Below are positions 32,103-50,700 of a stretch of DNA of 64,000 nt, piece by piece. The stretch is from Mytilus edulis. Taxonomy: Eukaryota. The position numbers and the translations under genes are program-made. A model generated the notes under the pieces. The model was not told the origin of the DNA. It saw only the letters and a program-made list of their open reading frames with translations, and ran no database searches. Position 1 is the first letter of the stretch; every line of letters starts with the position of its first letter. Location of the stretch: the NCBI RefSeq assembly GCF_963676685.1, contig NC_092344.1:109430001-109494000 (forward strand), read 5' to 3'.

Positions 32103-34364
32103 GTAAACACATTGTTGTCGTAAATCTTCATATTACTTTTTCATATTTTTCTGTCTGTTTTTTGTAGACTAGACAAGCACAAAAATGTAAGAGACGATTG
32201 ATTCTCTTCAAAAAGGGACAATACATTTTGCTCATTTCTTTTTAAATATAGCAAACTACAATAAGCACTATCTTTGACAAGCAAGATAAACTTAATGTTT
32301 CCTGTAAAAACAGTGAGGCAACCAGTATATTTGTTAGTCGTTCTATTTAAGAGGCAATTTTTTCTGCTTACAAAAACACAATTCGCAAGAAACAACAGAT
32401 GTTTCTCATTTTAATCCCCTGGATACAATTTGTTGTTAATATATAAGACGAGTCTTCACCATGTAAATCCAACCAGAAAGGGTGGTTTGACAGGAAATCT
32501 TTATCTTTGTAGCAAAATTGTTAACCTTTTAAAAAAAATATGAAAAACCCGTACTCTAAAGAATACACGATAAAAATCTAAAAAAAAGATTATAGTAGGA
32601 ATGCGTGTTGGTGACAGTCCTGTATATGCTGTGTGTTATTATTTCCTGCACTTTATATATATAGACTAGCTTGCACACTGAGATAGATAGTTTGCACATT
32701 ATTTTGTACGTTGTTTAGACACGTTTTGGAAAACACTCATAAATTTTAAACCTATTTGCATGCTGAATTATTTTGTCTTTCAGACGAAACGTTTCTCCTT
32801 TACTGAGTGAAGAATTCCAATGCCGATGAAAAAGACAGATTTCAGGTGCGATACATTGGTGTGACCTGTGCTGCATATAAAATCCACAATTTACCCATCA
32901 TCATCAACTTCCGCTTTAATTAGCTTTTACCTGGCTTTTGGTCCTATTTAGTTCGTTCCATGTTTTATGTTCTTTGTTTTATCTTCCTTTTCACTCTGAT
33001 GGTATAATGTTTATTTTTGATATTTATTTAAACTTCAATTTAATATTGCATATATTATGACTTGTTTGCAAGTTGCAAGTGGTTTTTTTTTTTATACATT
33101 TTTGTAAATTTTGTTTAAATATACTAGCTTACAACTTTAATTTATTCCAAACATTCATGGTATATATTAGAGAGATTATAATATGATAAATTAGTTTTCA
33201 TTTCATCCATAAAAAAGAAACGTCATAATTTTCTAGAAATACAGCAACAATTTAAAGTAACTAATGTTAAGTTTGTGATAAGAATTTGATACATAAATCT
33301 ATATCAACTAAGTATTTTTCAGTCCCTTTATACAATATGTCAAACATTCGGTGTCTTGACTCTCGCTGCTACCTCCATGTATCCCGCTTATTACTTGGTC
33401 ACACCAGTGTTTGCATATTCCTGAAATCCTTGTTTCTTTCTTTGTCTCAGTCTTAGTTCATTATGCTTTTGCTTTTGTTGCAATAATTTTGCACTTACTT
33501 TCTCTGCGATGCCATGGATATGAAATAACGTTTGAAAACATGCTTTTTGTACATTACTATGGATAAAGAGTAAAGTTTGCAGACTTTCTTTTTGAGTGAT
33601 ATTATTAAGTTATTCCTGTTTAAAAGAAGTATTACCAGATTGATGTCAACTTTTCAGCAAACGTGAGTTGGTCTCCACTTCGTTTAATATTTGATTTGGT
33701 TGTTGTTTTCATATATTTTTGCACGACATGTTTCAATTCTTATAGACATAAAAAAATGTAGTATGAGTGCCAATGAGAGAACTCTCTATCCAAGTCAAAA
33801 CTTGTAAACGTAAACAATTATACGTCAGGTACGGCATTCAACATGACGCATTGGCTGACACCGAACAGCAATCTATAAAGGGCCCAAACATAATTAGTGT
33901 TAAACCATTCAAACAGGACAACCAACGGTATAATCTGTATTAAAAAAAAAGAGAAATGGTTTGTATAGTGAAAACATCAATAAAATAGTTGATGCTTATA
34001 ACATAAAATATTTAGAAAAATTATAAAAGCTGTTGCGAATGCATTCACTTGGAACATTCGAATACTGACTACTATTGACTTCGAAACATTAATAAAATCT
34101 TTAACAAAAAGATCTCCAAAGACATTATTTAAACTGTGTTAAAACGTACCAAAATGAGCATTTACTGTTACAAAACTTGCTAGAAAAAATAGATTAATAT
34201 AGCACAATCGATATGATTTCAAATGTTGGAATTTGCTATAAATATCTTAATGTGAAGTGCATTAGATGTTGAATTGAAATTGAACTGCATTAGATGAACT
34301 GCCTTAGATGTTTTGTATTTGGTTATATTGAGGCTTAAGACCCATTTCATTTTTTTATTTTCAG

Positions 34365-35062
34365 GAACATTAGATATGGTGGGCAGAGAGACAAATACTA
34401 AAACAAGAAGCTGCAGTAGCTCTCCATTATTTGAACAGCCACCGACAAAGAAAAAATCAATTTTGAAAAAGGATGACCTTCAAAATAATTTTCGTTCGAC
34501 AGACAAATCGACGACAAACGATGATGACGTTTTTCTTCCTGACAATAATGTCAATTTTCAACAAACACATTCTAATATATTTTCTGAATTAAATCAGATT
34601 CCAGTTAAAGATGGCAATGACAACAGTGGAAAGTATTTGGCGAGTCCTAGTTCTCAAATATCAACAGAATTCACTGGAAGTCAGAGCATCGGAGATTTAG
34701 AATTCAGTGACAGTATGGCAAATCAACATAAATTATCAAATTGGCAGTGTGATGGTCAATCGTGTCAGAACGATACAAGTCCATCGGATAATTTAGATGT
34801 AGACGAAAGTATATTAGGCTCAAATTCTTGTGATCATTCTCCTTCTGAAATGAGTTTTTCTTCTCATAATTTTAACAGGTTATCTCCTCTTGACAATGAA
34901 AACCTGGATGCAAAATCAAATGCTGACCAAAGGGATTTTATATATTCCAACTCTAATCAAAGTACCGTAGTACCTATAGATGCTTTAATTAACAATCTCA
35001 GTAGACAGCATTCTGGAGATAGTGACAAGGACCAATATACGTCTGCGAATGCAAGTGGGTGA
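34365..35062 (+). CDS. Shab: Kv2/Shab terminal coding exon (disordered Ser/Asp/Asn-rich tail)
   Basis: Acceptor TTTTATTTTCAG|GA is phase 1, matching the previous donor. Open to TGA at 35060-35062. Confidence 0.82.
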
Positions 35063-38000
35063 CGGAATGTGTGTACTAGAAATAGGTACATTATCTTAAC
35101 CAAAAATTTATATAACGACATAACATAAGTAAACATAAAATCACTTAAGATGTATGCATATTACATAACAATACATGTTATTCAAGGTAACTTCAAAGAA
35201 TCAAATATAATTGTTGATTGCAGGTGATATATATTGAAGAATTTAAGTTGTTTCTGTTTATTTCTCGCCGAACGAAGCAATGTAGTATTCTTTATTCTAG
35301 AATTCAAATAGACAAACACAGAGGTTACGATAGTCGGAATGCAATATACAGTAGACCACGTACGAAGAGAGTGAGTGGGGATTTTGTCAGGTCTTGTCTA
35401 CATTTACATCAAGTTAAAAGAGGCACTCTCATGAACATGGTTAACGATTGATTGACAGATGGTTTGTTTGTTTGTAAACATCCAGCTGCAAATTTACGAA
35501 ATTTCTTCCAATGAGTTATATATAGTTGGTCATTCGCTCTACTGTTACATGTATTCAATACGCTTGCATGATATGCCATACAAATATTCTTGTTTCATAG
35601 AATAAAACGCTGTGTCGAGATTTGAACGTGCTACACACGAGTTACACAGTTGACAGCAGGCATTGTTATCAGAGCTCAGGAGGACCAAATTTAAGTCTGT
35701 ATTTAATTCAAAACTGTTGTGATAATTTTTAATTCACTGTAGCCTGGCAGCTTTCATTTCACAAATTTCAATAACTTATTTATATTGATAATCTTTTGGA
35801 ATTCCTTAGTTCAGAAAACAGGAAAACCTTAATATTAGAGTTAAAGGGCACATCAACATGAAAGATAATTATTTGAAAGCCAAATTTGTTTATCCTAACA
35901 CTCAAGTAGAATTTAGTGTTCTGTTGACGAGTATTTATGCTGGCAGAGGAGACAATTAAACGAATCTGTGTATTGTTGATAAACTTTCATTTTCTTTTGC
36001 TATATCGACACATATTGGCTGATATTTTAGTTCGTAAACCCTATTTTTTACATTTGTAGATTTAAGAAAATAACCTTGGAATTTGGAAATAAAGACGGAA
36101 AAGAGTACTTGAAACGCAGAAAGAAGCATTTGAAAATCTGTGACTGAGAATGGTCACAAGCATTTGACTATAGAATAGTTATAGGATGATTCAGCTCAGA
36201 ATATGAGGTGTTTGATCCCATTGTCTCTGACCGTCTGCTTGTTACGTCATTATATTTTCTGACAGTATCATACCATTTAGATATCAATAATTTCTTTAAG
36301 ATCTGTTCACAAATCCTTATTAGGTCAGAAAATACAAAAATTAGCATTTGTATAAGTCAGTTTCCAAAGTCATTAAGGTTCATTAATGTTCAATAAGGTT
36401 ACACTACTGAGTCTTACTCTGAAACTTATCACTGTTCTTTATGAAGCGAGAACACTTTGATTTCATTGTAAATATAAAAAAACATAAATTAAACATGTAT
36501 TAACTAATCCTTTTCATTACAAGTTGAGCAATGCAAACTTTTTAATATTGGCGTAATCGTCTAATGATGAAAATGTGAAATATTGTTTTGGTACTTGATT
36601 TTTAGTCATTAGATTGTTATTGTTATTGCCAAAAATATTTACCCGATATGGCATTTTGCATTGGGTAAAGTATGACCTTTTCTTTTTTGGAGAAAGTGGC
36701 TGCTGATGATTTTTCTTACACGTTATAAACGTCATTTTATTCTAGCAGTAAAGTTGGTAAAGTAATTGCATTTTTCAAGTATTTTCATAAAGTAAATTAT
36801 TACTTTGGATATCGCACACGACTGATTAGAAATATTTTCGAAATGCCAGTTTATGGACCTTAAAATTTTCTTCCACGGTTTGTAATTATGTATTGATATA
36901 AAATATATTTTATGAAATGTGAAGTTGATATAAAGAATACACTAGAAGTCTATTGATAAATTATAATGGATCTTATTTATTTTGAAGAGTAATAATTTAA
37001 GTCTATTGATAAATTATAATGGATCTTTTTCATTTGAAGAATGATAATTTTGAGATAACAGTGAAAATCAAATAACAGACAATGAATTGAACAATCGTTT
37101 AGATACAGTGTGTATGAATTCATCATACTTAAATATTAATAAAATGTCCCAAACCTTTATAGATTACTCATTTCAATTGTGCATGAAGATTGTTTTTTCT
37201 TCCTGAAAGCTGGAGAATAGTGATATTCTAGTACGATGATTACCATAATTATCAGAAGAATAATACCCATTTAGTTGTGCTTTATTGAACATACTTTTGT
37301 GAACCTTTAATCTTTAAAAACCACTGAATAGTAAAATTACTATTTTTCATGTTGAATTTTTATGAAGCCTCCTACACCGCTATTTATATATCTGACATTA
37401 TTATTCTTGTGCAATTTGCATAATTTACATTAGATAAATATGGAGATTGTAATGACAGTTTATTATAAATTCTACATAAATGTCATCGGTTTCAATTTTT
37501 GTATCTTTTAAGGAGAACAGTATGGCACGCTGTATTTATATTTATTCAACTTAAATGTCTTTTTACTTTATTAGATATCTTTACTTTTAGAAGATATCTT
37601 TAAAAATATTTGTAAGATATCTAAAATGTTCGTAAGGTTATAGATTAAGGCGACAGTAGTTCATCGATGTTCAAATATCGTAAATCGATTAAGAAGAAGC
37701 AAAACTTGAAACGCATTAACTCCAAGATTTTTTCTAGATATATTAGATATTTTATAGGATTTGTGTTTATTAGATATATATCTTAAATATTTAATGATCT
37801 ATCTTTTAAATTTTAAAATATATCTCATATAAAATCACAGGAGGTTGAAATCCTATCAATGAGGGTCTATAAATATGTCAACTCGACTATCACAGTAGAG
37901 CTTCTCTCGTAGAGAGAAGCGACAGGAATGCAACGCGTTTTTCATTTTTTTTTAACTTTTTTGAATCTGGGACTTTTTGATCGGAATAAACGCTATGCGT

Positions 38001-38197
38001 CAACTAATAAACATATTGTTACTTCAATTAACCACTTAAACTACTTTGCAGGTCACTAATTATTAATTTACAGCTTCTTTTTACGTCCTGACAGAATCCT
38101 TGTCATTATTTTTGGCCATGGGAGGAAGTCGAGGAAATTCCAATCAGCAGTGAATATCGATCGACTATCTCATGAATAAACATTAGAACATTGAACT

Positions 38198-38240
38198 TTT
38201 GAACTTTTGAACCATCATGAACTTCCGGTTTCTTTCCCGC
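38198..38240 (+). promoter_or_regulatory. Putative cell-cycle promoter module (2x CHR TTTGAA, ETS ACTTCCGG, E2F TTTCCCGC)
   Basis: Motifs at 38198, 38206, 38221 and 38233, 30-75 bp upstream of the ATG at 38272. A further E2F site TTTGGCGC lies at 38438. Confidence 0.45.
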
Positions 38241-38271
38241 AAAATTATTTCTTTCTACCAGAGCTGTCAAA

Positions 38272-38369
38272 ATGGACAATAGACGAGAATTTTCGTTCGC
38301 CAAAGCAAGAGAGGGCCATAATTTGCTAATTACAGGCATGTGTGGAACAGGGAAGACAAGTATTGTAAA
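38272..38369 (+). pseudogene. First exon of a Pif1-like (SF1B) DNA helicase; downstream exons not found
   Basis: MDNRREFSFAKAREGHNLLITGMCGTGKTSIVK: Walker A GxxGxGKT preceded by GHNLLITG, as in Pif1 motif I. Good start context (CAAAATGG), candidate donor AA|GTATGA at 38370. Confidence 0.7.
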
Positions 38370-39849
38370 GTATGAGTATATTTCATCAGCAATTAGTAAA
38401 AATGCGTGATAAAAGTAAAACATAAAAGCTCTGAAAATTTGGCGCAAGTTATTTTTGGTCGTATGCCCTGTTTGCCTCGGGGTCCTTGAGGCATAAAGAT
38501 TGTTCGAGAGATTGTTACTTCATCTCAACATGAAAAAGCATAAATAAAACAGAAAAAATATAATATCTCGAGTTTTATTCTATTTTATTCACGTATGAAT
38601 TAAAATTATTGATAAAATTTGATGAAAAAAAATTGGCGCATTTTTCTGATAGTATGCCATGAATGAGGATTGGATGTATTCTTGGCATGGTGGTCCTCTT
38701 ATTATAAAGATTGTGAATTAAATTAAGGCACTGATCATTCATCTTTTGAATGAAAGTTGGGTGTTTTTTTTTTTTTGAAAAAATGTTTGATAATTTCTGA
38801 AATTTGTTAAAAAAAAAAGTTTTACGGGAGGGGATATAAAAACTGAACATTAAACCCGGTACAAATTTATCAAGACATTGAACCCGTGCTAGGATACAAT
38901 TTAAAAAAAGGCAGGACAGGATCAAAGTTTTGAGTGAAAAGCAGGAGGAGCAGCTGGACAAATCAATCCAGGATTAAGTTATAAAAAAGAGACGGGACCA
39001 AATATCACACATATAGTGAAAAAAATTAAAAATGTTAGACAGAGATTGCAACTAGAAAAAGGCAGCCCAAAATATAGTCCCCCCCCCCCCCCCCCTCCCC
39101 CTACTAAAATTAAATCATAGCCTAATTCTAAACTATAAACAGCCATAACCAAAATACCAAACAAACTGTAACTTCTAAGTATGTGTGACTTGTCTTGTGT
39201 CTTGCAAGTCAAGAAAATGATTTGTTTCAATAAAAAAAATCTATGTCCCATGCATATTTTCATTGGTCTTATGCATTGAGAAATTTTGACCGGTCACTTA
39301 AACAGTTAGAAGTACAAAAAAAATACATTATGTTTCAGAAAAATATTTGTTGTTTCTGTATGCTATAAAACATTAGTTTGTTCCTTTAAAACATAAAAAA
39401 GTTTGTTCTGAGAAAATAAAGGTTTCCCACCCCTCTAAAGATGAATGGTTGGTGCCTTTTTAAAAACTTGATATCACACATATAATCACCCAATGCACCC
39501 TAAAAATTATAAATTTGTTTTACAAACTATATGATAGAAATGTGTCCTTTATATTGTGTTCAGTACCCAGCTTGGCTTTTATCTTTTATTATCCTTTTGC
39601 CTTGATCAGCAGAGTATACATGTGGCAAGTGGATCTTTTCCTATATACAGGTAAATCTAAATCTTCACATATTTGAGTCAGGCTAATGTCTCCTTCTCCA
39701 TCATTATGTCATCCCAGACTTTTTTATTTTTTTTATTTTTTTGGGTCCGAATTCAGTATGCCTGAAGTTAGAATATTAAAATTTAAATATAACGTATACA
39801 TAAATCCGGACATCCTGGCATTTCAATTTTTCAGGTGGTTATGCCAATA

Positions 39850-40070
39850 GGAATCCTCTAGATTTTTCCTCTATTTGAAGGTAATGACTGAATATTTTTA
39901 TTGCTGATTATTTTTTAACCGATGGATATAGTATGAAAAAAATCAAAATGGAGATATTATATAGTGTCTTTAACAACATTAAAAGAGTAAAATTGTGATA
40001 TTTAACTGGTGTCGATACATATCAATTAAATTCATTTGCATTGAAGTCTATGAAAAGTCTAGAGGATTCC
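39850..40070. mobile_element. Small MITE with TA flanks
   Basis: AATAGGAATCCTCTAGATTTTTC (39846) is the inverted match of GAAAAGTCTAGAGGATTCCTATT (ends 40074), one mismatch. Confidence 0.8.
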
Positions 40071-40710
40071 TATTAGTTTCATCTCTCAACATTGTTTACA
40101 TAACAAAAATGCCCGAGCAAAAATGCTAATCATTGATTGGTCAGTTATAAGTTGTGATGTCACTGCAAATTTATGTATGTATAAAAAAGAGGATGTGGTG
40201 TGATTGCCAATGAGACAACTCTTCACCAGAGACCAAATGACACAAAAAATAATGGCCTGATTAATTTACAAAAAAATTAACAAAAAACAAATATGTAACT
40301 CAACAACGAATTACAGGCTCCTAACTTGGGACAGGCACAAACATACATAATGTGGCGGCTTAACCATGTTAGCGGCATCCTAACCCTCCCCTAACTTGAG
40401 ACAGTGGTAACAGTACAACATACGAACGAACTATAAAAATCAGTATTGTTTGAAAACCCATGGACAACCTCACAAGACAACGTCCAGGGATGTCAACAAA
40501 AACCTTGGTATCATTTACAGTACACTGAAAAACTATCCAAAAACTATAAAATATGTATAACATAATTATTTTCATAACTAACTATTACAGGAAGAAGTGA
40601 AATATTTTCATCACAAGAACACAGGATGTTAACTGGATTTTTTTTCAGTTAAGTATATATATATATTAATCAGTAACTAAAATAGAAAATCAAAAATGCC
40701 CCAGATTTAA

Positions 40711-41417
40711 CAGTCAGGGGTATGACTCAAACAAGTGATTTCATTATCGCTTATTTCAGTGATTTTCAAATTTCAGTAATCACCTATTTAAGTGATTTTG
40801 GTGTTTTCTTTGATCTTCAAATGCTGATTTCACTAATTTTCCATGAAATGGCAATTTTTTCTGAAATTTGTCTACATAGATCAATTATCTCTTTATCTTG
40901 ATATATCAATTTTATCAGTGCGCTTGGGCAGCAAGTTAGTGCGCTGAAGCTTTTAAAAGAACCCTTGGGACTATTTCTGTCTTCTATATACTATATTTCT
41001 AGAGTTTACTACTCTACCAATAACATAAAGGTCAACACATTTATGTAATCTGCTTTGTTTTCTTTATAATTAGTATGATTTACTTCAAGGTTTTGACCGT
41101 ATCTACAAATTATCCCAGTTTAAGCATAATCCAAATAAATTTTAAAAACTGACAAAATAATTTAGCAAAAGAGCATTTTTGCATGTATTCAGTTGTATTT
41201 TCAATAGAATAGTTTTTTTAACCCTATGTAAATCTAGATTGTGGGTAAATTATTGAGAAAATGTTATAATAAGTGATTTAATGTTTACATCTCAAATCAC
41301 TTATGCAAGTGATTTTAAAAAGTGTTTCTAATTTTATAAACATTTTTCATTTTTCAATAGTGCAATCACTTTAATAGGTGATCCTGAAATCACTTGTTTA
41401 AGTAGTACCCCTGACTG
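40711..41417. mobile_element. MITE, CAG...CTG termini, 5-bp TSD TTTAA
   Basis: CAGTCAGGGGTATGACTCAAACAAGTGATTTCA versus TGAAATCACTTGTTTAAGTAGTACCCCTGACTG. TTTAA on both sides; internal AGTGATTT repeats. Confidence 0.85.
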
Positions 41418-42166
41418 TTTAATGTTTAGTCAATAAATTCAATGTTTTAAATAATATCAAACGTACCAGGCTTTTAATGTTAACCAGACACCTGTTTTGT
41501 GTAATCAACACTTATCAGTGACTCAAATCGAAATATTAGTTAGGCAAAAAAAAAATCTAGAGCATAAGACAAAATGATATTTGATATAAGTGCCAATAAG
41601 ACAATGTAATAGTTATGTAATTTATGACACAGGTATTGACTCACTCCAAAGAGCAAGCTATAATGGCCAAGGCATTGCCAGTGTAAAACAATTTAAAAGG
41701 AAAACCAACACATACAAAACCGGAAAAACTGATGACCAATAAATGATTTTTTCGTGGTAAAGTCAATATTCCAGATACAATAAGAACTAGACTTGCCATT
41801 GCGAGCAATAGCAGATGTCACCCCGTTCCCCCATTGCCAGGCCATCTGGCCGTTTCCATGACAACGGCAGCCATTTTGAAATTTCCAAAAGTCAAAAAAC
41901 ATATCTTTATATGCTAAATCAACTGTCTATAAAGTTTCATAAAATTTGGAGAATTTTGAAAATTTTCGAGTTTTTTGCCATTTCTATGGTAATAATAATA
42001 AGCTAATAAGAATAGATCTTTTATATTTGTCGTTTGGAATGATTGTAAGGTACACACGTCCAACTTTCAGGACATTAAGTTTTACATCATTAAGAATTGC
42101 ATTTTACAGTCAATACATTGTAGTACTTTTATTATTTCAGTGAAATATTTGTTTATTTCATTACAG

Positions 42167-42842
42167 GAGCACAGGAGCACTGGACATTTATTGATTCTTT
42201 CCATAGCAACACCACCAACAGCAGCAAAAAAGTTCAAGCATTTCAAGAATGGAATGTTCTGTCCAAACAAACATGTCTATCACACCTTCAAGAGCTGATA
42301 TTGGAATCATTATTAGTAGAATGGAAAACAGGGATAAAATCTAGCAAAAGGCCCAGTCGCACATGGCCCCTAGATTTTGAGCTGGGCTACTAAATTACCT
42401 GGAAAATATACTGACTCAAAGACAGACTGAAATACAGACATTGACTGAAGAAATGAATGAGGACAAAGAAAAGATGGGAGCAGATTACAAACAAAAGCTT
42501 GCTAATATAGAATCCATACTGAAGAAAGAAATGGCAAATCAGAATGATTTAATGAATGAATTAAAACAAAATAAAGAAATAAAGAGTCAATGAGCTTCAG
42601 TCTGCTCTTCGTGAAAAAAGAACAAGCTATAAAACTTCTCTAAAAACCAGTAAAAGTGCTTGGGACTATGAACTCATTAATTTTAGGGAAGAGTATAGTG
42701 TGAAAATGTCAGAAATTGAAAGAGAAAAAAACAGACAAATAGAGGATGTAAAGCAAAGAAGACTGAACATGGAAGAATCATGTCATATTCTGGAAGACAA
42801 ATGGAAACATCCTTGGCTGAAAAAAATAGTTTAAAGCAACAG
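42167..42842 (+). pseudogene. Frameshifted exon of a coiled-coil protein (cargo in the TIR element)
   Basis: Acceptor TTTCATTACAG, donor CAG|GTAACA. Heptad-like segments in shifting frames: LENILTQRQTEIQTLTEEMNEDKEKM..., VNELQSALREK..., KMSEIEREKNRQIEDVKQRR..., METSLAEKNSLKQQ. Confidence 0.6.
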
Positions 42843-43374
42843 GTAACAATTTAACTAGATAAAAGTGATCTTGTTCATGTATTTTTTTGCATGTTAACTT
42901 TTTATACATTGTGATTTGGATGGAGAAGTGTCTCATTGGCACGCATACCACATCTTATTTATATTTGAATACTTTCATCAAACTTTTATTGAAAAAGTCA
43001 CCTTTAAAAAAAAAATAGTGATAAAAACATTAAAAAAAAAACAATTGAGACATGATGACAAAGCTATACATTTTGTATGAAGCCATTCTTAGATTGCGTG
43101 CACGATCAACGGTTTGACAAGCCTATTATATTGCTCAAAGACCATTCAATTCTTATAATTACATATTTTTGCTAGGATGAAGGAAAAAACAATCTCTATC
43201 ATTTTTTTGTATATATTTACCTGTACATATAAAGCATGTGCTATCATGGGTGTTACATATCATTGTGCTATGAAGAATGACGTGAGATTGTTGTTAGCCA
43301 ATCAAAATAACAGATTTATATGTTGAAATATACTAGTACTGTAATGTAATTATTTGGATTAAAAGGGTTTTTTT

Positions 43375-44060
43375 TTTACCTGCGTCACCAACGGTGAAAG
43401 CAGGTCTAGTAACCGCTCGACTCCGTCCGTCATTCCGTCCGTCCGAAAGACTTGCATATCAACTTTAGTCAAAGATTTCTTGGCTTCTATGAAAGGGAAT
43501 GATTTTATATTTGGTCCAGAGCTTGATCATGTTGAGTTGTAAAGTGTAAGCAATTTTTAGATCTGCGATGCAGCCACTTCCTGTTTGCTGATAGTTTGAA
43601 ATTTAGCTACTCAGTGTACAAGGAAAATTTTTCGTCAAAGTTTTCTTGGCTTCTATGAAAGGGAATGATTTTATATTTGGTCCAGAGCTTGATCATGTTG
43701 AGTTGTAGTGTGTAAGCAATTTTAAGATTTGCGGTGCAGCCACTTCCTGTTTGCCGATAGTTTGAAATTTAGCTGCTCAATGTACAAGGAAAATTTTTCG
43801 TCAAAGTTTTCTTGGCTTCTATGAAAGGGAATGATTTTATATTTGGAACAGAGCTTGACTATGTTGAGTTGTAGGGTGTAAGAAATTTAAAGATCTGTGG
43901 TGCAGCCACTTCCTGTTTGCCGAAAGTTTGAAATTTAGCCACTTATTGTACAAGGAAAATTTTTAGACAAAATTTTTTGGTTTCTATTGAAGGAATTGTT
44001 TTAGATTTTCTGTAGAGCAAATATATGCAGTGACGCAGGTCCAGACCAGTATTGGTCTTG
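43375..44060 (-). mobile_element. Helentron-associated (HINE/DINE-1/pearl-like) element with about 3.3 x 166-bp internal tandem repeats
   Basis: Terminal hairpin ACCTGCGTCACC-AAC-GGTGAAAGCAGGT, (TCCG)n microsatellite, units at 43468, 43634, 43800 and 43966, subterminal IR GTGACGCAGGT, inserted at a T-run. Confidence 0.8.
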
Positions 44061-44399
44061 AATGCTGGATACTATCCATGCATGTCTGTGTCCACACAGT
44101 AAATTAATTATAAATTTCCGGATCTGCATTATTCATCATACGTAGCTGTTATAGTTTTAAATGATAAAAGCAAACAGTTTTACAATTTTTTTTCTAATTA
44201 TTCATTTGACAATATATAGTTTTCTTATTATTTCAGTGAGACGTTTCAATATTTCATCACATGAACACTGGGACATCTATAGAAACAAGTGGGACATGCA
44301 GTTTATTGATATTCTAAATAAAAAAAAATTGCTTCCAATTTCATTTCAAGCTTTTGTATTTGACCTTTAGAATGAGAAGATTTATATTCAATTCTTTAC

Positions 44400-44768
44400 A
44401 CCGCCTCGGTGATGTAATGGTTAGTGTGGTCGCCTCGAGTGCGGTAGGTTGTGGGTTCCACCCTCGGTGGGGTCAAACCAAAGACTTGAAAATTGGTATT
44501 TGCTGCTTCTTCGCCAAGCACGCGGCAATAAGGAGTTAGAGCAAAGACTGTTCGGCCCGGACTGTTCAGTCAGAATAATGTGTCTGGGTAAGTGACATAT
44601 ATTCCTGCGAACTGTTACCTTGTGAGCTAGCATGTTAAAAATCCAGGTCAGTGTGTCGGTCGAGTACAAAGCAGGGTTAATATTCATTAATCATTATCAT
44701 GTTCTCATCCTGAATATGCATCTGACTTGCCACTGGACGTTAAACAACCATCCATCCATCCATCCATC
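44400..44768 (+). mobile_element. tRNA-derived SINE (MetaSINE-like core) with (CCAT)n tail
   Basis: A box GGTGATGTAATGGTTAG, B-box-like GGGTTCCACCC, core GGTCAAACCAAAGACTTGAAAATTGGTATTTGCTGCTTC, tail GGACGTTAAACAA(CCAT)n. Confidence 0.8.
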
Positions 44769-45727
44769 AATTACTTATTGTTTGATTGCTGGTAACCCTT
44801 AATTTAACTGCTACTGTAATTTCCTTCCACTGTAGTGTAATTGTAGTGTAGTTTGTAATTGAAAACAGACAACCATTTTGACTGACATATTGCTATCCAC
44901 ATAAGTTGCTTTAAAAATCTTCCCTTCTATAGACTGATCAGAATCGTATTTAGAACATCTAATCGTATAAATAAGAAGATGTGGTATGAGTGCCAATGAG
45001 ACAACGCTCCATCAAAGTCACAATATATAAAAAGTTGATAATTATAGGTCAAAGTACAGCCTTCAGCCTTCACCACAGAGTTAAGTTTCTGTTAAAATTA
45101 TACCCCATGACGCCATCAACCAACATGATGAAAATAGAGTTATTTTTTTCAGTTTCATGCAGTTTTCAATTGATATTAAGTACATAATTTTATAATGATA
45201 AAAGAAAGGTAAAACCGACTTGAAAGGGACAATCAAACTTGAATGTAGAAAGGAAACTTACATAAACATGGATAGATATGTATTTCATTTTTTTTCTGCT
45301 TACAGACCCTTTGCATATAAGCTTATTCCATACAGAGATTAATAATTCAATTAAGTGTGTCCTCTATTTGAATTGAAAATAACAGGTTCTCTGGTTATTG
45401 CAGTGGTCAGTCTGTCTGTTGACCATTTTCAGTGTTGAGACTACAGAATTTAAGATTTGGTCCATTTTCAATAGTGGCCTTTTCTAAATCTTGCTTGTAA
45501 CAGAGTTGCAGGAGATTCATATTGGTTTTGGTTTAAAAAAACTTACAGATTATACTCTCAAGATTATTTTTGTGGTATGCTATTAATGAGAGACATGTAG
45601 ATAATTTGCATTGACTCTTATACCAGTGGTGCTATTTATATTTATAGGCTTTCAAATCTTATTCTATTTTGATATTGGTATAGAAAGCCTCATAATTAAA
45701 AAGTTGGTCTATATACAAGGTCATAGG

Positions 45728-45885
45728 CATAGGCGGATCCAGGGGGGCCCCCCCCTTTCGTGGGAAAAATTTGGTTGATTATATAGGGAATCACTGAAGC
45801 ATGACTGGAGCGGGCTCCCCCTTAGGTCAGTCAGCGGGCCCCCCCCCCCCCCCCCCCCTTATGAAAAGTTCTAGATCTGCCACTG
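45728..45885. mobile_element. 158-bp G/C-run MITE, 5-bp TSD ATAGG
   Basis: CATAGGCGGATCCAG versus CTAGATCTGCCACTG; ATAGG at 45723-45727 and 45886-45890. Confidence 0.75.
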
Positions 45886-47458
45886 ATAGGTCAACCCTTG
45901 ATTTGTAGTGTACACCATATATTGTTACATGAATGGTGTGATACTTTATGAAAGTCATTCTGCATACATGGTCATAGACATATGTCAACATTTTATTTAT
46001 ATTATGCTTTATATCTTGGTGAATAAATATAATCTGGTAAGTAATTCAAAGGTTTGGTCTTCTAACAAGGTCGCAGAAATATTGTATGTTTTGACTATTT
46101 GTATAGTTCACAAGAATTGTTGCATGCATGCTTCATACGAGAACTAAGCTACAATTGTGGTCAAAAGGCAGATTATTTAATCTAATACATTGGTTTGAGT
46201 TGAGTTTACCCGAAAGATATCTTGTATACTTGCAGCTGTTAATTATATTTATAAACTGGTAATTTAAACTAGTAAACAGAATACCCAATAAAAATCTAAT
46301 CTGGTGATTAGTTAAAAAGTTTTGAATGATCATGGACACAGGCCCATCTTCTTATCACTAGTCTATTACAGATTATTATGGAAGACAGTCGTCCTACAAT
46401 ATTTAAAATTGTTGACGAGCAAGCACACTACAATATATCTGTTTATGTTATGACCAAGCATTCATGCATGTGGTGGTATGTCAAAAGAAACTGCTAAAAA
46501 CTGCCAAGTATTTAGACCAAAAATTGAGTTTACTGCTACATACCAAATAATAGGGTAGGTGGGTAGAAGATCAAATATTTTTACTATTGCTTCCTTATTA
46601 TTAATATATAGAAATAGTTTATAAAAAAAATGAAATTCTGTTTCTATGCAAACAAGAGGTATCCTTAATTTATTTGATTCAAAGTATGTTTTTTTTTCCA
46701 TAAGATGAAATGACTAACTTGCAAATTCATAACCTAAGGTTATTTGTCAATAAAAAAGCAAAAGTAGGTAAGGTGAAAGTACATAAGTACATATCCACTC
46801 AGATGTGGGTGGGGTTTACAGAATGGAGAATAAGGAGTGGGGGCTAGAATAAAAAAAAATACCTGCAAATATTACAGAACAGTCAAAAGTATATCTGAAA
46901 GCAATTTCCAGACAACAGTAAGCAAGTAATTATTACATAATAGCCATTGTTTTTATACAAATAAAGTTTGATGTGTGAAAAAATTAAAGAATACATCATT
47001 TCAAGATTTAACAGACATAAATATAAATTTGATTAGACTTCATGAACTAATGAAATAAGGCAAAATAAAATTTATGTGTGCATTCAGTTACATCTAAAAA
47101 AAGAAAGTTACATGAAGAGAATTTTTAAAGCCTTTTTTACATTGGGTCTATAAGAACAACATTCTTACTTTAACGGTGCTTAATGAAAAATGACAGAAAA
47201 ATCTGTAGGGTAGGCAATTAGTAATTTTAAGACTAAAAAGTATAGGGTAACTGAAAACTCACCCCATATATTTTTATTTGTCCTAACCAAAATGAATGAT
47301 TATTATTGCACCATCTGTAATATGTATTTAATTAATTATTAATTATTTTTCTAAAACCATAAATCATTAGTTGTTGAAATCTTTTCAATTTTTTTTGACA
47401 CATCCATTGATAAAATTTCAAGAACCTGGGCATATTTTTTTCCAAAGTACTAATATAT

Positions 47459-47756
47459 GAGGGGGAGGACAGGGGTAAGGGAGACAGGGAGAAAGGGGGT
47501 AGGAGAAAGGAGAAAGGGGGTGGGAGAAAGGAGAAAGGGGGTAGGAGAAAGGAGAGGAAGACTGGGAGAAAGGAGAAAAAGTTGGAGAAAGGAGAAAAAA
47601 TGAAATATCTCTCCTTTTAAAAAAATTTCTAATATTTCAAGAAAAAATATCTCAAAAGGAGATGTTTTATTTTAATGGGAGAAAGGAGAACGGGGGTAGG
47701 AGAAAGGAGAAGAGGGGTGGGAGAAGGGAGAAGGGTACCCCCCTGTCCTCCCCCTC
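47459..47756. mobile_element. Sola2-like MITE (GAG...CTC, 4-bp TSD ATAT) with polypurine GGAGAAA array
   Basis: TIR GAGGGGGAGGACAGGGG / CCCCTGTCCTCCCCCTC with ATAT flanks. Confidence 0.75.
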
Positions 47757-50700
47757 ATATATTTTTCCAAATAATCATTTAGTTTACATCCCCTTTCTAC
47801 AAATATTTCTAACATAAGGACCCCTTCATTTTTTTAAAAGTGCAAATCAAGCTATCCACTGCTGGAACTGATACTGAACATAAATAAAAAATTACAAATT
47901 TCTTATTTTGGTCTGTGCTCCCCCTTTTTTGTTTTCACTTAGAAATTCTAATTAAGGATATAATTGGGCAGGTTACAGGTTTAAGGTACTGATGAAAACG
48001 TGTATTACCATATAACTGTATCTATTTGCTTTGACATGATCACTTGAAACAGTAATAGAAAGAAGAATTCTTCAGATTATTGTGAAATTTAAATTTCCCG
48101 CATGTAAACTTTTTACACAGAAGAGTTGTTTCCCTTGAACTTCCAAGCGAACAATTAAATTTAATGAAGGGACGGATTTTTTAATAGTTTGACATCATAA
48201 TACTTTAGGAATAATTATGAGAAAGTACTTGATAAATTTGTATGATTTATTTCGACTGTTTGTTTAATGAAATACTATACCTCATTTACATATATTCACT
48301 GCTGATTGGAATTTCCTCGACTTCCTCCCATGGCCAAAAATAATGACAAGGATTCTGTCAGGACGTAAAAAGAAGCTGTAAATTAATAATTAGTGACCTG
48401 CAAAGTAGTTTAAGTGGTTAATTGAAGTAACAATATGTTTATTAGTTGACGCATAGCGTTTATTCCGATCAAAAAGTCCCAGATTCAAAAAAGTTAAAAA
48501 AAATTGAAAAACGCGTTGCATTCCTGTCGCTTCTCTCTACGAGAGAAGCTCTACTGTGATAGTCGAGTTGACATATTTATAGACCCTCATTGATAGGATT
48601 TCAACCTCCTGTGATAAAATACAGGCTAGAAAATATGTAATAACAAAAGAAAAATATCGTTTCAAATATGATCAAAGTCTTCAGGAAAGGAGACATCTTA
48701 TTTAGATTAATATATATCTTTGATATATTTTCGAATTATTGACAAAGATTTTTGATGAATTTAGACAATATCTAGAAGATTTTATAAGATGTCGAATAAA
48801 GAATTGTTTTAAGATATTTTTTCTTTTATAGAATACTAGTATATAATTTAAAAGTATCTCATATAATATTTAGTATATCTTATAAAGAAAAGTTATATGA
48901 CCAGTAAAGTTATAAAGATGTATCTTTTAGAATATAAGTCATATTAAATGTTTAATAAATATGAGTATAGCGTGCCAGTGACTATACGGTGCTAAGTTAG
49001 TGTGCTTAGGAATACTTGTTTTATTGAACACCGTTATACTACCATGCCTTTATTCGTATTAAGAAAACTAGTCCCAGTTAAAGAGGAAATTACTACAATA
49101 TCTAGGATATTATAGCAGTATTTATGTATAATTTCATAAAACTATTGTTGACATTACCATTACTGATAAAAATACATTTTATATTACGATCATTTGTTAC
49201 GATCTAATGCCTGCTCTTAAATCCTGGATAAAACAATAGAACATTGAACACTTGCCTGTAGTCTGATTGTGATTTTTTTAGCTGTGATATTATAAATAAA
49301 ACCAAATATATGATGGTTTATGAAAATAGGATGGATTATTATAAGTTTGTTTTGAACAAGTGATATGAAAAGTTGTTGCTGAAAGTTGCCAGCTGTTATA
49401 TATATATGTTATAAAATATGATTTTCCTTTACAATTCTACGACGATGGTCGATTTCAATTCCTACACATTTGCCTTATTTTTTATTTTATTTTTCATAAA
49501 TTTTAATCAACTAGGTTTTAATATTTTGAATAGCACAGTTTGTTAGATATTTGTTTTGTTTGTTAATTTTAAAAGATATGATGCGTTTTACTTTGTTTAT
49601 TTTATTTTAGTTCATTTTACTTTTTTTATTCGACCTCGTCTCGTTACAATTTGTTTTTATTGTTATGTGATGCTACCACCTTTTTTACAATAGTCTCTTG
49701 CACTACTGTTGTTATCTTGTATATAAATGTTTTTGTCTTCCTGTTATATTCCTTGCCATTTCATGATTTTTATAACTTCCTTTCGATGAAAACGTTTTTT
49801 ACACGTACTTCATATGAAATGTAAATCGAGGATATATTAGAAAGAATTACTTCATTACTATTCGGTAAGCATAAGCGAAAACGTTTTATCTATTGAATAG
49901 CGTGTCTTGTTGACGTTGTATACAGTCGTCCTTGTTAAGTTTTATGATGTTAGATACTACAAAACAGGACAGGAAAATTATGTTATTCTCTCCAGTGTAA
50001 TAAAATTCATTAATTTGCATCAGTGTATTTATCTTAATGCGATTCTTACTCGAAAGTAGATCAGATGATCCCAACACCCTACATAGTAGCTATGCAATTA
50101 CTATTTCTCTCTAAGAATAGCTCTCTGCTCAGTCAAACACATTAGGAAGACGAATTCTGTTACTCCTGTTTTTTTTCAAATCTCAACTGATTTGTAAATA
50201 TTTCGATAAAAAAGAATCAAGAATTGTGGTCAATAGATACGCTTGTATAATAATAATGCGTTCTCTATTCGCAACCTGATAAGTTTACTTAAGATATTTA
50301 AATGCGTTTCATTACAATTTAAATCTATTTTACTAACCTTTTGCAAGGCATCATGTAAATTATTCCTGGAAATATTGCAAAATGTTAATTTCTATCAGTA
50401 AGTGTAAATTGAAACTATGAAATATAAAACTCGTTCTAAGAAACATCATATATTTAATATTTGTATAAACTCCTTTGAAATATCGAATTCGTCTAAACTG
50501 GACCATAAAACGGTGATCAAATGCTACCACGTCGGCACATTCGTACAACGCTGAACGATGTATAGATAAGTTAATGTCTATAATTAACGGACAACAATTT
50601 ACTTAACAACTTGGAATCCTTTAAATACAAAGATTTTAATTGTTTTCAAATAAGTAACCATGCTAAACATACTTCTTCACGGCATAATTGGTAAAACAAT

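Follow-up and report, generated by a model that had tools for sequence, protein, structure and literature searches.

Architecture and identity of the element

A 64,000-nucleotide stretch of the Mytilus edulis genome (assembly GCF_963676685.1, contig NC_092344.1, positions 109,430,001 to 109,494,000 of the forward strand), referred to here as the window, carries a 10,778-bp transposable element with the start of a Pif1-family helicase reading frame just inside its left end. The element proper (37836–48613) begins with CACAGG, ends with CCTGTG and is flanked on both sides by ATAAAAT, a 7-bp target-site duplication (TSD). A repeat search delimited inverted-repeat arms of 324 nt (37834–38157 and 48292–48615) that are 100% complementary, 2 of the 324 nt in each arm belonging to the near-palindromic TSD. 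The ATG at 38272 lies 115 bp inward of the inner end of the left terminal inverted repeat (TIR) and opens a 33-residue peptide, MDNRREFSFAKAREGHNLLITGMCGTGKTSIVK, after which the translation of 38272–38400 (+ strand) continues as YEYISSAISK. Read without splicing, the frame extends for 45 codons to a TAA stop at 38407–38409, 12 codons past codon 33. GT dinucleotides are positioned at 38365–66 (GTAAAG) and 38370–71 (GTATGA), the second of which, AA/GTATGAGT (the slash marks the candidate exon end), cuts codon 33 after its second base (phase 2). The initial annotation, made from the letters of the window alone, had described a P/Galileo-like long-TIR element with a 7-bp TSD and an ATG 115 bp inside the left TIR opening a 33-residue peptide followed by a GT; the arms, the duplications and the translation bear out both descriptions, as does the wider TIR family, whose 15 independent insertions include 13 with a perfect 7-bp TSD.

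Relatives of the element were sought in 1.37 Gb of Mytilus sequence in 14 chromosome-sized contigs (C1 and so on). A sister copy at C11:19197590-19207666 has the same TIRs, its own TSD (GTTATTG) and a stub region identical at 403 of 403 bases, and is separated from the window copy by large, kilobase-scale internal indels. At C1:62.3M, an old and decayed copy retains the order of TIR, stub and downstream sequence, with three stops within the stub. Subfamily B, which is ~82% identical and 6.7–7.9 kb long, is without the stub. At the right end of the window element, ~530 bp counted from the terminus are 98% identical to a copy on C9 and 76–78% identical to subfamily B. The family also includes many foldback miniature inverted-repeat elements (MITEs) of 150–255 bp, composed of the first 75–100 bp of the TIR placed head to head. 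Those at loci L020–L029 (154–255 bp; e.g. C7:89012315-89012486) are 95–100% identical to the window TIR and mostly bear perfect 7-bp TSDs. Since MITEs of this kind are 100% identical to the tips of the window TIR, a matching transposase must have been active recently. One further copy (L033) is chimeric and lacks matching TSDs. The 2-kb stub region was present in 20 further sequencing runs; these come from 12 studies and carry three organism labels, a distribution which suggests that the family is shared within the species complex.

The stub peptide was compared with the genome in a six-frame search. The best non-self matches (E 7e-4 to 9e-4, 43–56% identity) are to the first 32–33 residues of PIF1-family open reading frames (ORFs) of ~1,040–1,140 aa, and ten of them are near-identical copies of a 1,084-aa protein, designated hel1084. 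This protein (L057:4893-8144) starts with MDEDQKFAFNLAVNGHNLLISGQAGTGKT, matches PF05970 (PIF1) at 6e-24, contains a Pif1_2B domain and a C-terminal PHD finger, and has been deposited as CAG2206493.1, 'PIF1 [Mytilus edulis]'. In the reciprocal tblastn search with hel1084, the sole match in the window was 38272–38370 (55% identity, E ~6e-6 in this small database). Over aa 1–33 of hel1084 the stub shows 55% identity, compared with 48% to the helicase of a second lineage at locus L059. Motif I stands at the N-terminus in its Pif1 context, with GHNLLITGMCGTGKTS of the stub aligned to GHNLLISGQAGTGKTF of hel1084. The remaining hallmarks of the family, motifs Ia–VI and the 2B domain, gave no match in the window at E <=50. 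Together these matches support the identification of the peptide, by sequence, as the N-terminal end of a Pif1-family helicase, with its motif I. The initial annotation had proposed motif I of the Pif1/RecD type, and the genome-wide matches are to helicase N-termini.

Full-length relatives pair a Pif1 helicase with a P-type transposase

The hel1084 gene resides in an 8,167-bp element with 606-bp perfect TIRs and the same CACAGG end (e.g. C9:86119868-86128034; L057:4250-9501 corresponds to C6:89588249 onward). The unit begins with CACAGGTACTTGAGG, 643 bp 5' of the helicase ATG, which is placed 37 bp inside the TIR. At least 10 copies with ~100% identity were found. Five lie within C6:89.04-89.66 Mb, and the set looks like a very recent burst. 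At C6:89380962-89397278 one copy is nested in the right TIR of another, whose interrupted halves comprise TIR positions 198–606 and 1–205; because the halves overlap by 8 positions, the TSD is 7–8 bp. Beyond CACAGG, the window and hel1084 TIRs share no significant similarity (406 of 500 shuffles scored as high). Both the hel1084 family and a further family on C5, described below, have MITE swarms equivalent to those of the window family.

We searched the genome with PF21787, which models the N-terminal portion of the RNase H domain in transposases of the P-element/THAP9 type (curated cut-off 24.6 bits), and obtained 47 matches. Every hel1084 element contains one of them, on the strand opposite to the helicase; it falls in an open frame of 798 aa and scores 56.7 bits. 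A PF21787 match lies 3–6 kb away from 24 of the 48 non-self matches of the stub peptide, always convergent and above the cut-off, in ~10 lineages; at E <=0.02, 14 of 16 peptide matches are linked to a transposase in this way. Chance co-location within 12 kb would be expected at ~0.001 per site, given 47 matches in 1.37 Gb. The helicase-linked transposases score 31–65 bits, as against 71–97 bits for the best canonical ones in the same genome, and PF21788, the GTP-binding insertion domain found in canonical P/THAP9-like copies, is present beside only one helicase-linked lineage. The distribution of PF21788 suggests that the helicase-linked transposases form a divergent P-like clade. No transposase family was matched by hel1084 aa 431–1033 in Pfam at E <=1, and the protein atlas gave no usable match to the middle region of the protein.

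These data support the conclusion that full-length relatives carry a Pif1 helicase together with an opposite-strand P-type transposase. The pairing recurs in about ten mussel P-superfamily lineages, in each case with a Pif1-PHD helicase of ~1,040–1,140 aa, and some of the helicase-bearing copies are virtually identical, which argues that they have been active very recently. The initial annotation had predicted a full-length form encoding a spliced Pif1 helicase, possibly with an opposite-strand transposase; the pairing is supported at 24 loci, and evidence for splicing is indirect, as discussed below.

The L059 lineage mentioned above (L059:3757-7058 and L059:7258-7500, C5:69525756 onward) encodes a frameshifted helicase 53% identical to hel1084, with the same succession of Pif1 domain, middle region and PHD finger. 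CACAGG occurs twice 5' of its ATG, at distances of 566 and 599 bp, and the last 81 codons of its convergent transposase extend off the locus.

The window copy is a non-autonomous shell

Apart from the stub, no coding part of such an element was detected in the window copy. With two helicases as queries, tblastn at E <=50 and word size 2 gave nothing past codon 33 in the window, and further helicase segments were likewise absent from the C11 sister and from subfamily B. A profile search gave no PF21787 match in the window copy, the C11 sister or subfamily B, and no transposase stub was found in the right subterminal region. Pfam found no real family among the 16 interior ORFs of at least 60 aa. 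A tblastx comparison between the window element and subfamily B, intended to reveal hidden coding exons, gave only strand-symmetric, stop-containing matches, indicating that the shared interior is non-coding. The window copy is therefore an internally deleted, non-autonomous member of its family, as the initial annotation had supposed. As neither a helicase body nor a transposase is present, it would have to be mobilized in trans.

Part of the interior consists of inserted repeats. The repeat at 40175–40363 (within 40064–40457) is a nested high-copy sequence related to a ~320-bp unit with thousands of candidate sites in the genome. Transcript reads (see below) reach their greatest depth in the mapped region over 40064–40457, on both strands and with many variant letters and loose ends; they stem from other copies.

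A first exon or a truncated reading frame

Judged by stub and terminus, the window element has its nearest relative at C5:82807683-82823806, where a 16.1-kb element (locus L060 covers its left 3.3 kb) has a CACAGG end and 327-bp perfect TIRs. Its helicase ATG is positioned 31 bp inside the TIR. The C5 stub is 43% identical to that of the window and contains the same unusual cysteine (GQCGTGKT, compared with GMCGTGKT in the window). Helicase homology ends at the same codon in both, and in C5 the boundary reads AG/GTATAAAT, again with GTAT and in the same phase. When the window and C5 sequences were aligned and scored against shuffles, the terminal 90 bp gave z 3.7 (none of 300 shuffles reached the score) and the stub gave z 6.9.

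In the C5 element, in an element on C2 and at C12:80552810-80558827, the helicase is broken into pieces corresponding to aa 1–33, aa 41–144 and a segment running from aa 185, 228 or 263 onward. The transposase lies in antisense orientation between the first piece and the second (Table 1). The C12 locus, which is duplicated between C9 and C12, shows part of the C5 order. In three lineages (C5, C2 and C9/C12) the aa 41–144 piece stops precisely at aa 144, immediately before the highly conserved motif III (VGDFYQLPPV), and in the intronless lineages the alignment continues straight through this point. A six-frame search detected no Walker A match beside these body pieces; the only Walker A in the C5 and C2 elements is in the TIR-proximal 33-codon stub. 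Stub-only left ends of the C5 type also occur at C11:31.2M and C2:17.68M, with no transposase match nearby. The best reading of these sequence comparisons is that the stub represents the first exon of a spliced helicase gene, with codon 33 as its predicted true end and a first intron of ~5–6 kb that would enclose the antisense transposase gene.

Table 1. Features of the window element (positions in the window) and of its C5 and C2 relatives (contig positions)
Feature	Position	Strand	Basis
Left TSD, ATAAAAT	37829..37835		Identical to 48614-48620
Left TIR, start CACAGGAGG	37836..38157	+	100% complementary to right arm
Leader from TIR to ATG, 114 bp	38158..38271	+	Identical in C11 sister; recognizable in decayed C1:62.3M copy
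33-codon helicase stub, Met to Walker A GTGKT, presumed exon 1	38272..38370	+	Translation; homology to helicase N-termini
GT of candidate splice donor, AA/GTATGAGT, phase 2	38370..38371	+	C5-family stub ends AG/GTATAAAT, same codon and phase
45-codon read-through ORF ending in TAA	38272..38409	+	Translation
Interior, no coding capacity detected; high-copy repeats (nested), tandem repeats and homopolymer runs	38410..48071		Homology and Pfam searches
Right subterminal region	48072..48291	-	Conserved beyond the TIR in relatives; no ORF or transposase stub
Right TIR, end CCTCCTGTG	48292..48613	-	Complementary to left arm
Right TSD, ATAAAAT	48614..48620		Identical to left TSD
C5 P-type transposase domain, 813-aa open frame	C5:82812444-82812878	-	PF21787
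C5 helicase aa 41-144, 133-aa open frame	C5:82814347-82814655	+	Six-frame match
C5 helicase aa 263 onward, 655-aa open frame	C5:82817722	+	Six-frame match
C2 locus	C2:81091914-81099972		Six-frame matches
C2 helicase stub	C2:81091914		Six-frame match
C2 transposase	C2:81094877	-	Six-frame match
C2 helicase aa 42-144	C2:81097155		Six-frame match
C2 helicase aa 228 onward	C2:81099376		Six-frame match

We consider it probable that the stretch at 38272 is the orphaned first exon of a Pif1-family helicase gene from a mussel clade of P-superfamily transposons, held in a non-autonomous shell. Several observations weigh against this interpretation. Pfam scores the 45-aa ORF at only 13.0 bits for PIF1, with a cut-off of 25.9 (E 0.075), and ranks PIF1 below DUF815 and AAA_16; the stub falls under the PF05970 threshold because it is too short. 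In the genome we found no copy that combines the same TIR with further helicase motifs, and no full-length or transposase-bearing copy with exactly the window TIR; the survey of TIR-bounded copies proposed in the initial annotation recovered the stub in the C11 and C1:62.3M copies and nothing more of the helicase. The 97% identical TIR copies on C9 and C12 amount to one duplicated locus with a single TIR and an unrelated CXC-domain ORF alongside. Among full-length helicases, the one with the highest identity, hel1084, is encoded by a single continuous ORF of 1,084 codons and hence is intronless. The 110 bp that follow the stub in the window and in C5 give a weak z of 3.1, and AT-rich sequence inflates such scores. 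The C5 and C2 layouts are coordinates of six-frame matches.

The transcript data belong with these points. Four RNA-seq runs with the same species label were mapped on 37700–43600, 6–18% of each run being read. No splice joint or listed loose end was observed at 38364–38371 in the four runs, at low power, and the site is crossed by low, contiguous coverage; the junction reads that the initial annotation had suggested seeking at its proposed donor were thus not seen. Mean depth is at most ~12 per 197-bp bin across 37897–38684, an interval that extends from the inner TIR through the stub into what follows. Run X22 shows a low, continuous signal of ~4–5x over 38291–39669 in which first mates map to the minus strand; this suggests plus-strand, unspliced RNA. 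The absent junction fits an orphan donor that has lost its acceptors and fits equally well no donor at all. The joints that were listed (38776 to 39078, and others) link homopolymer runs and have GA..AG rather than GT..AG ends. A poly-T run (38766–38776) and a poly-C run (39079–39096) attract apparent joints as well as poly-C/poly-G loose ends, and the joints in 38776–39100 are most likely library or alignment artefacts.

Further observations concern the C9/C12 locus and the sequence upstream of the window element. Loci L005 (C9:68476289, +) and L006 (C12:80595659, -) have identical flanks in inverted orientation, and their helicase and transposase matches agree 40–45 kb away; the C9/C12 copies are a large inverted segmental duplication between chromosomes or else redundant assembly. 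Directly inside the 97% identical TIR and right subterminal sequence at this locus is an ORF pair of 199 and 356 aa, divided by a frameshift or short intron, with a Tesmin/TSO1-like CXC domain (L037:1059-2635, C9:68476847-68478423; also in L005 and L006) and protein atlas matches only to unnamed eukaryotic clusters. We rejected this CXC-domain ORF as the gene of the TIR family, since it is confined to the duplicated C9/C12 locus and absent from every other copy. In the window itself, 2.8 kb upstream of the element, 34313–35062 (+) encodes a 249-aa ORF rich in Ser, Asn and Asp, which may be a host exon.

Alternative origins of the stub

The most serious alternative to a first exon is a truncated reading frame, in which a deletion or rearrangement cut an intronless helicase after codon 33, the GT is coincidental, and the split helicases of C5 and C2 descend from the same old rearrangement and are defective too. 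This account would agree with the single ORF of hel1084, the most similar full-length helicase, and with the contiguous, junction-free RNA coverage. Gapped tblastn carried the helicase alignment weakly on to codon 45, an extension that is gone in the ungapped search, and internal-deletion derivatives are known for P-type elements (PMC7776569). What speaks against it is that the same end point, phase and GTAT recur in the C5 family, although its stub is only 43% identical to that of the window, and that a second sharp boundary, at aa 144, is common to three lineages. Long open frames also persist in C5 (133, 655 and 813 aa) and in C2 (699 and 886 aa, with one TAA in the aa 41–144 piece). We therefore regard truncation as improbable, while giving it more weight than any of the other alternatives. 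The 'first exon' and 'spliced' of the initial annotation accordingly stand on indirect support: the conserved ends of the C5, C2 and C9/C12 pieces favour them, and the intronless hel1084 and the missing RNA junction do not.

Capture of a host-gene fragment by an element of foldback type, the transposon then having no ancestral connection to the helicase, would explain why no copy of the TIR family has more of the helicase and why subfamily B is entirely without the stub. Yet the place and orientation of the stub match the helicase start of complete elements (115 bp inside the TIR, compared with 37 and 31 bp), half of the peptide matches and nearly all of the strongest are transposase-linked, and the termini resemble those of the C5 family, so that we consider capture very unlikely.

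No more credible is the idea that the stub has been kept for a role of its own, whether as promoter or leader, as a subterminal site bound by the transposase, or through a small P-loop peptide or antisense regulator. Stub-only derivatives do recur, both in the window family and in the left ends at C11:31.2M and C2:17.68M, and RNA coverage of the stub is low but present; against this, the stub of the decayed C1:62.3M copy has acquired three stops, subfamily B transposed without it, and closeness to the TIR alone accounts for its retention. A chance Walker A in a short ORF, to which Pfam lends some colour by placing generic P-loop families (all under their own cut-offs) above PIF1, is effectively refuted by the genome-wide matches at E 7e-4 to 9e-4, by identity that reaches beyond the P-loop (MD...F.F..A..GHNLLI.G), by the transposase linkage and by the z of 6.9 between the window and C5 stub DNA.

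Proposed history of the element

If the stub is an orphaned first exon, the ancestral gene would have begun just inside the left TIR with 33 codons that include the start codon and the Walker A (motif I), followed by the GT donor that now survives as a relic. Internal deletion would then have kept the TIRs, the CACAGG ends and the subterminal regions and removed the downstream helicase exons and the transposase, the space being filled in by unrelated repeats. The present copy would have inserted recently by P-type transposition, with its 7-bp duplication, the transposase coming in trans from autonomous relatives. In its present state the stub is unable to make a helicase and could yield at most a 45-residue peptide from unspliced RNA; it probably has no function and owes its survival only to its adjacency to the TIR.

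A more elaborate arrangement is possible, and we put it forward tentatively, as something we would not expect to hold in full. In the lineage of the window element, the two genes may have been nested, with a 33-codon exon 1 of the Pif1-PHD gene spliced over a ~5–6-kb intron that held the entire antisense P-type transposase gene, and with GT 38370 as the relic donor. Synthesis of the helicase could then interfere with, or be coupled to, synthesis of the transposase, and this P-superfamily clade might use its own Pif1 as a cofactor for transposition or repair.

The stub itself is a dead relic, and its value is as a pointer to the clade and possibly to the nested antisense arrangement of its nearest relatives. 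P-element excision gaps are repaired by synthesis-dependent strand annealing, and Pif1 helicases promote long-tract repair synthesis. This suggests that a transposon-borne Pif1 may allow an element to increase in copy number while such gaps are being repaired. The helicase is not needed in cis, since stub-only and helicase-less derivatives (the window element, its sister and the MITEs) have transposed recently; such derivatives are natural substrates for asking whether it is needed in trans.

Comparison with known systems

Full-text literature searches returned no description of a P-element, THAP9 or P-superfamily transposon, or of a bivalve element, paired with a Pif1 or other helicase, and a pearl-oyster genome paper merely lists Pif1-like domains among transposon-related domains. 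Helicases are carried by other transposons, namely Helitrons and AcademH; the Kolobok and MULE cases come from the initial annotation alone. The AcademH helicase is RecQ-like and of SF2, not a Pif1 of SF1B, and the AcademH transposase is unrelated to the P type. AcademH (Kojima 2020, as cited in PMC10045372) resembles the mussel elements in being a cut-and-paste DDE transposon with a helicase as second gene. It differs in its TSD, which is 9–10 bp as against 7 bp in the window element, and in that the mussel helicase belongs to the PIF1 family; the window element is thus not of the AcademH type.

The Rep/Hel proteins of Helitrons and Helentrons share with the mussel elements a Pif1-family helicase domain. 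Helitrons have a Rep (HUH) domain and neither TIRs nor a TSD, whereas the window element has long TIRs and a 7-bp TSD, and the helicase of its relatives starts at Met1 with motif I, which sets it apart from the Helitron type. Genomic ORFs of 2,000–3,200 aa, which we take to be Helitron Rep/Hel proteins, are 25–36% identical to hel1084, as against 40–71% for the transposase-linked clade, and the six-frame genome search gave no match between the stub peptide and these ORFs.

The termini of P-superfamily elements follow a CANRG consensus (Repbase classification), and CACAG(G) termini are common to the window, hel1084 and C5 families. The window copy has a TSD in the 7–8-bp range and CA-type termini, and it has no P-type transposase; its probable membership of the superfamily is based on the TSD, on the termini and on a modest resemblance of its ends to those of a family that carries a transposase. 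The transposases of its relatives match PF21787 above the cut-off, as those of P-element and THAP9 type do. The P element itself has 31-bp TIRs and an 8-bp TSD, and internal-deletion derivatives are typical of the group (PMC7776569). The window element differs in its 324-nt TIRs and 7-bp TSD, and its relatives in having PF21788 beside a single helicase-linked lineage.

We know of no helicase gene described for Galileo, a Drosophila member of the P superfamily; the complete mussel relatives add a Pif1-PHD gene of ~1,040–1,140 aa next to the left TIR. In other respects the window element resembles Galileo-type elements, deletion derivatives and MITEs included: in both, TIRs are long and of variable length, non-autonomous copies with two TIRs are numerous and chimeric copies that lack matching TSDs occur occasionally. 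The Galileo TSD is 7 bp (PMC3573991). The complete mussel relatives also have the P-type RNase H transposase domain that the window copy lacks. The hel1084 element differs from the window element in its 606-bp TIRs, dissimilar past the hexamer, in its intronless helicase and in being complete where the window copy is a shell. The two share CACAGG ends, long perfect TIRs, a helicase ATG just inside the left TIR and a TSD of 7–8 bp, and hel1084 adds to this plan the opposite-strand transposase.

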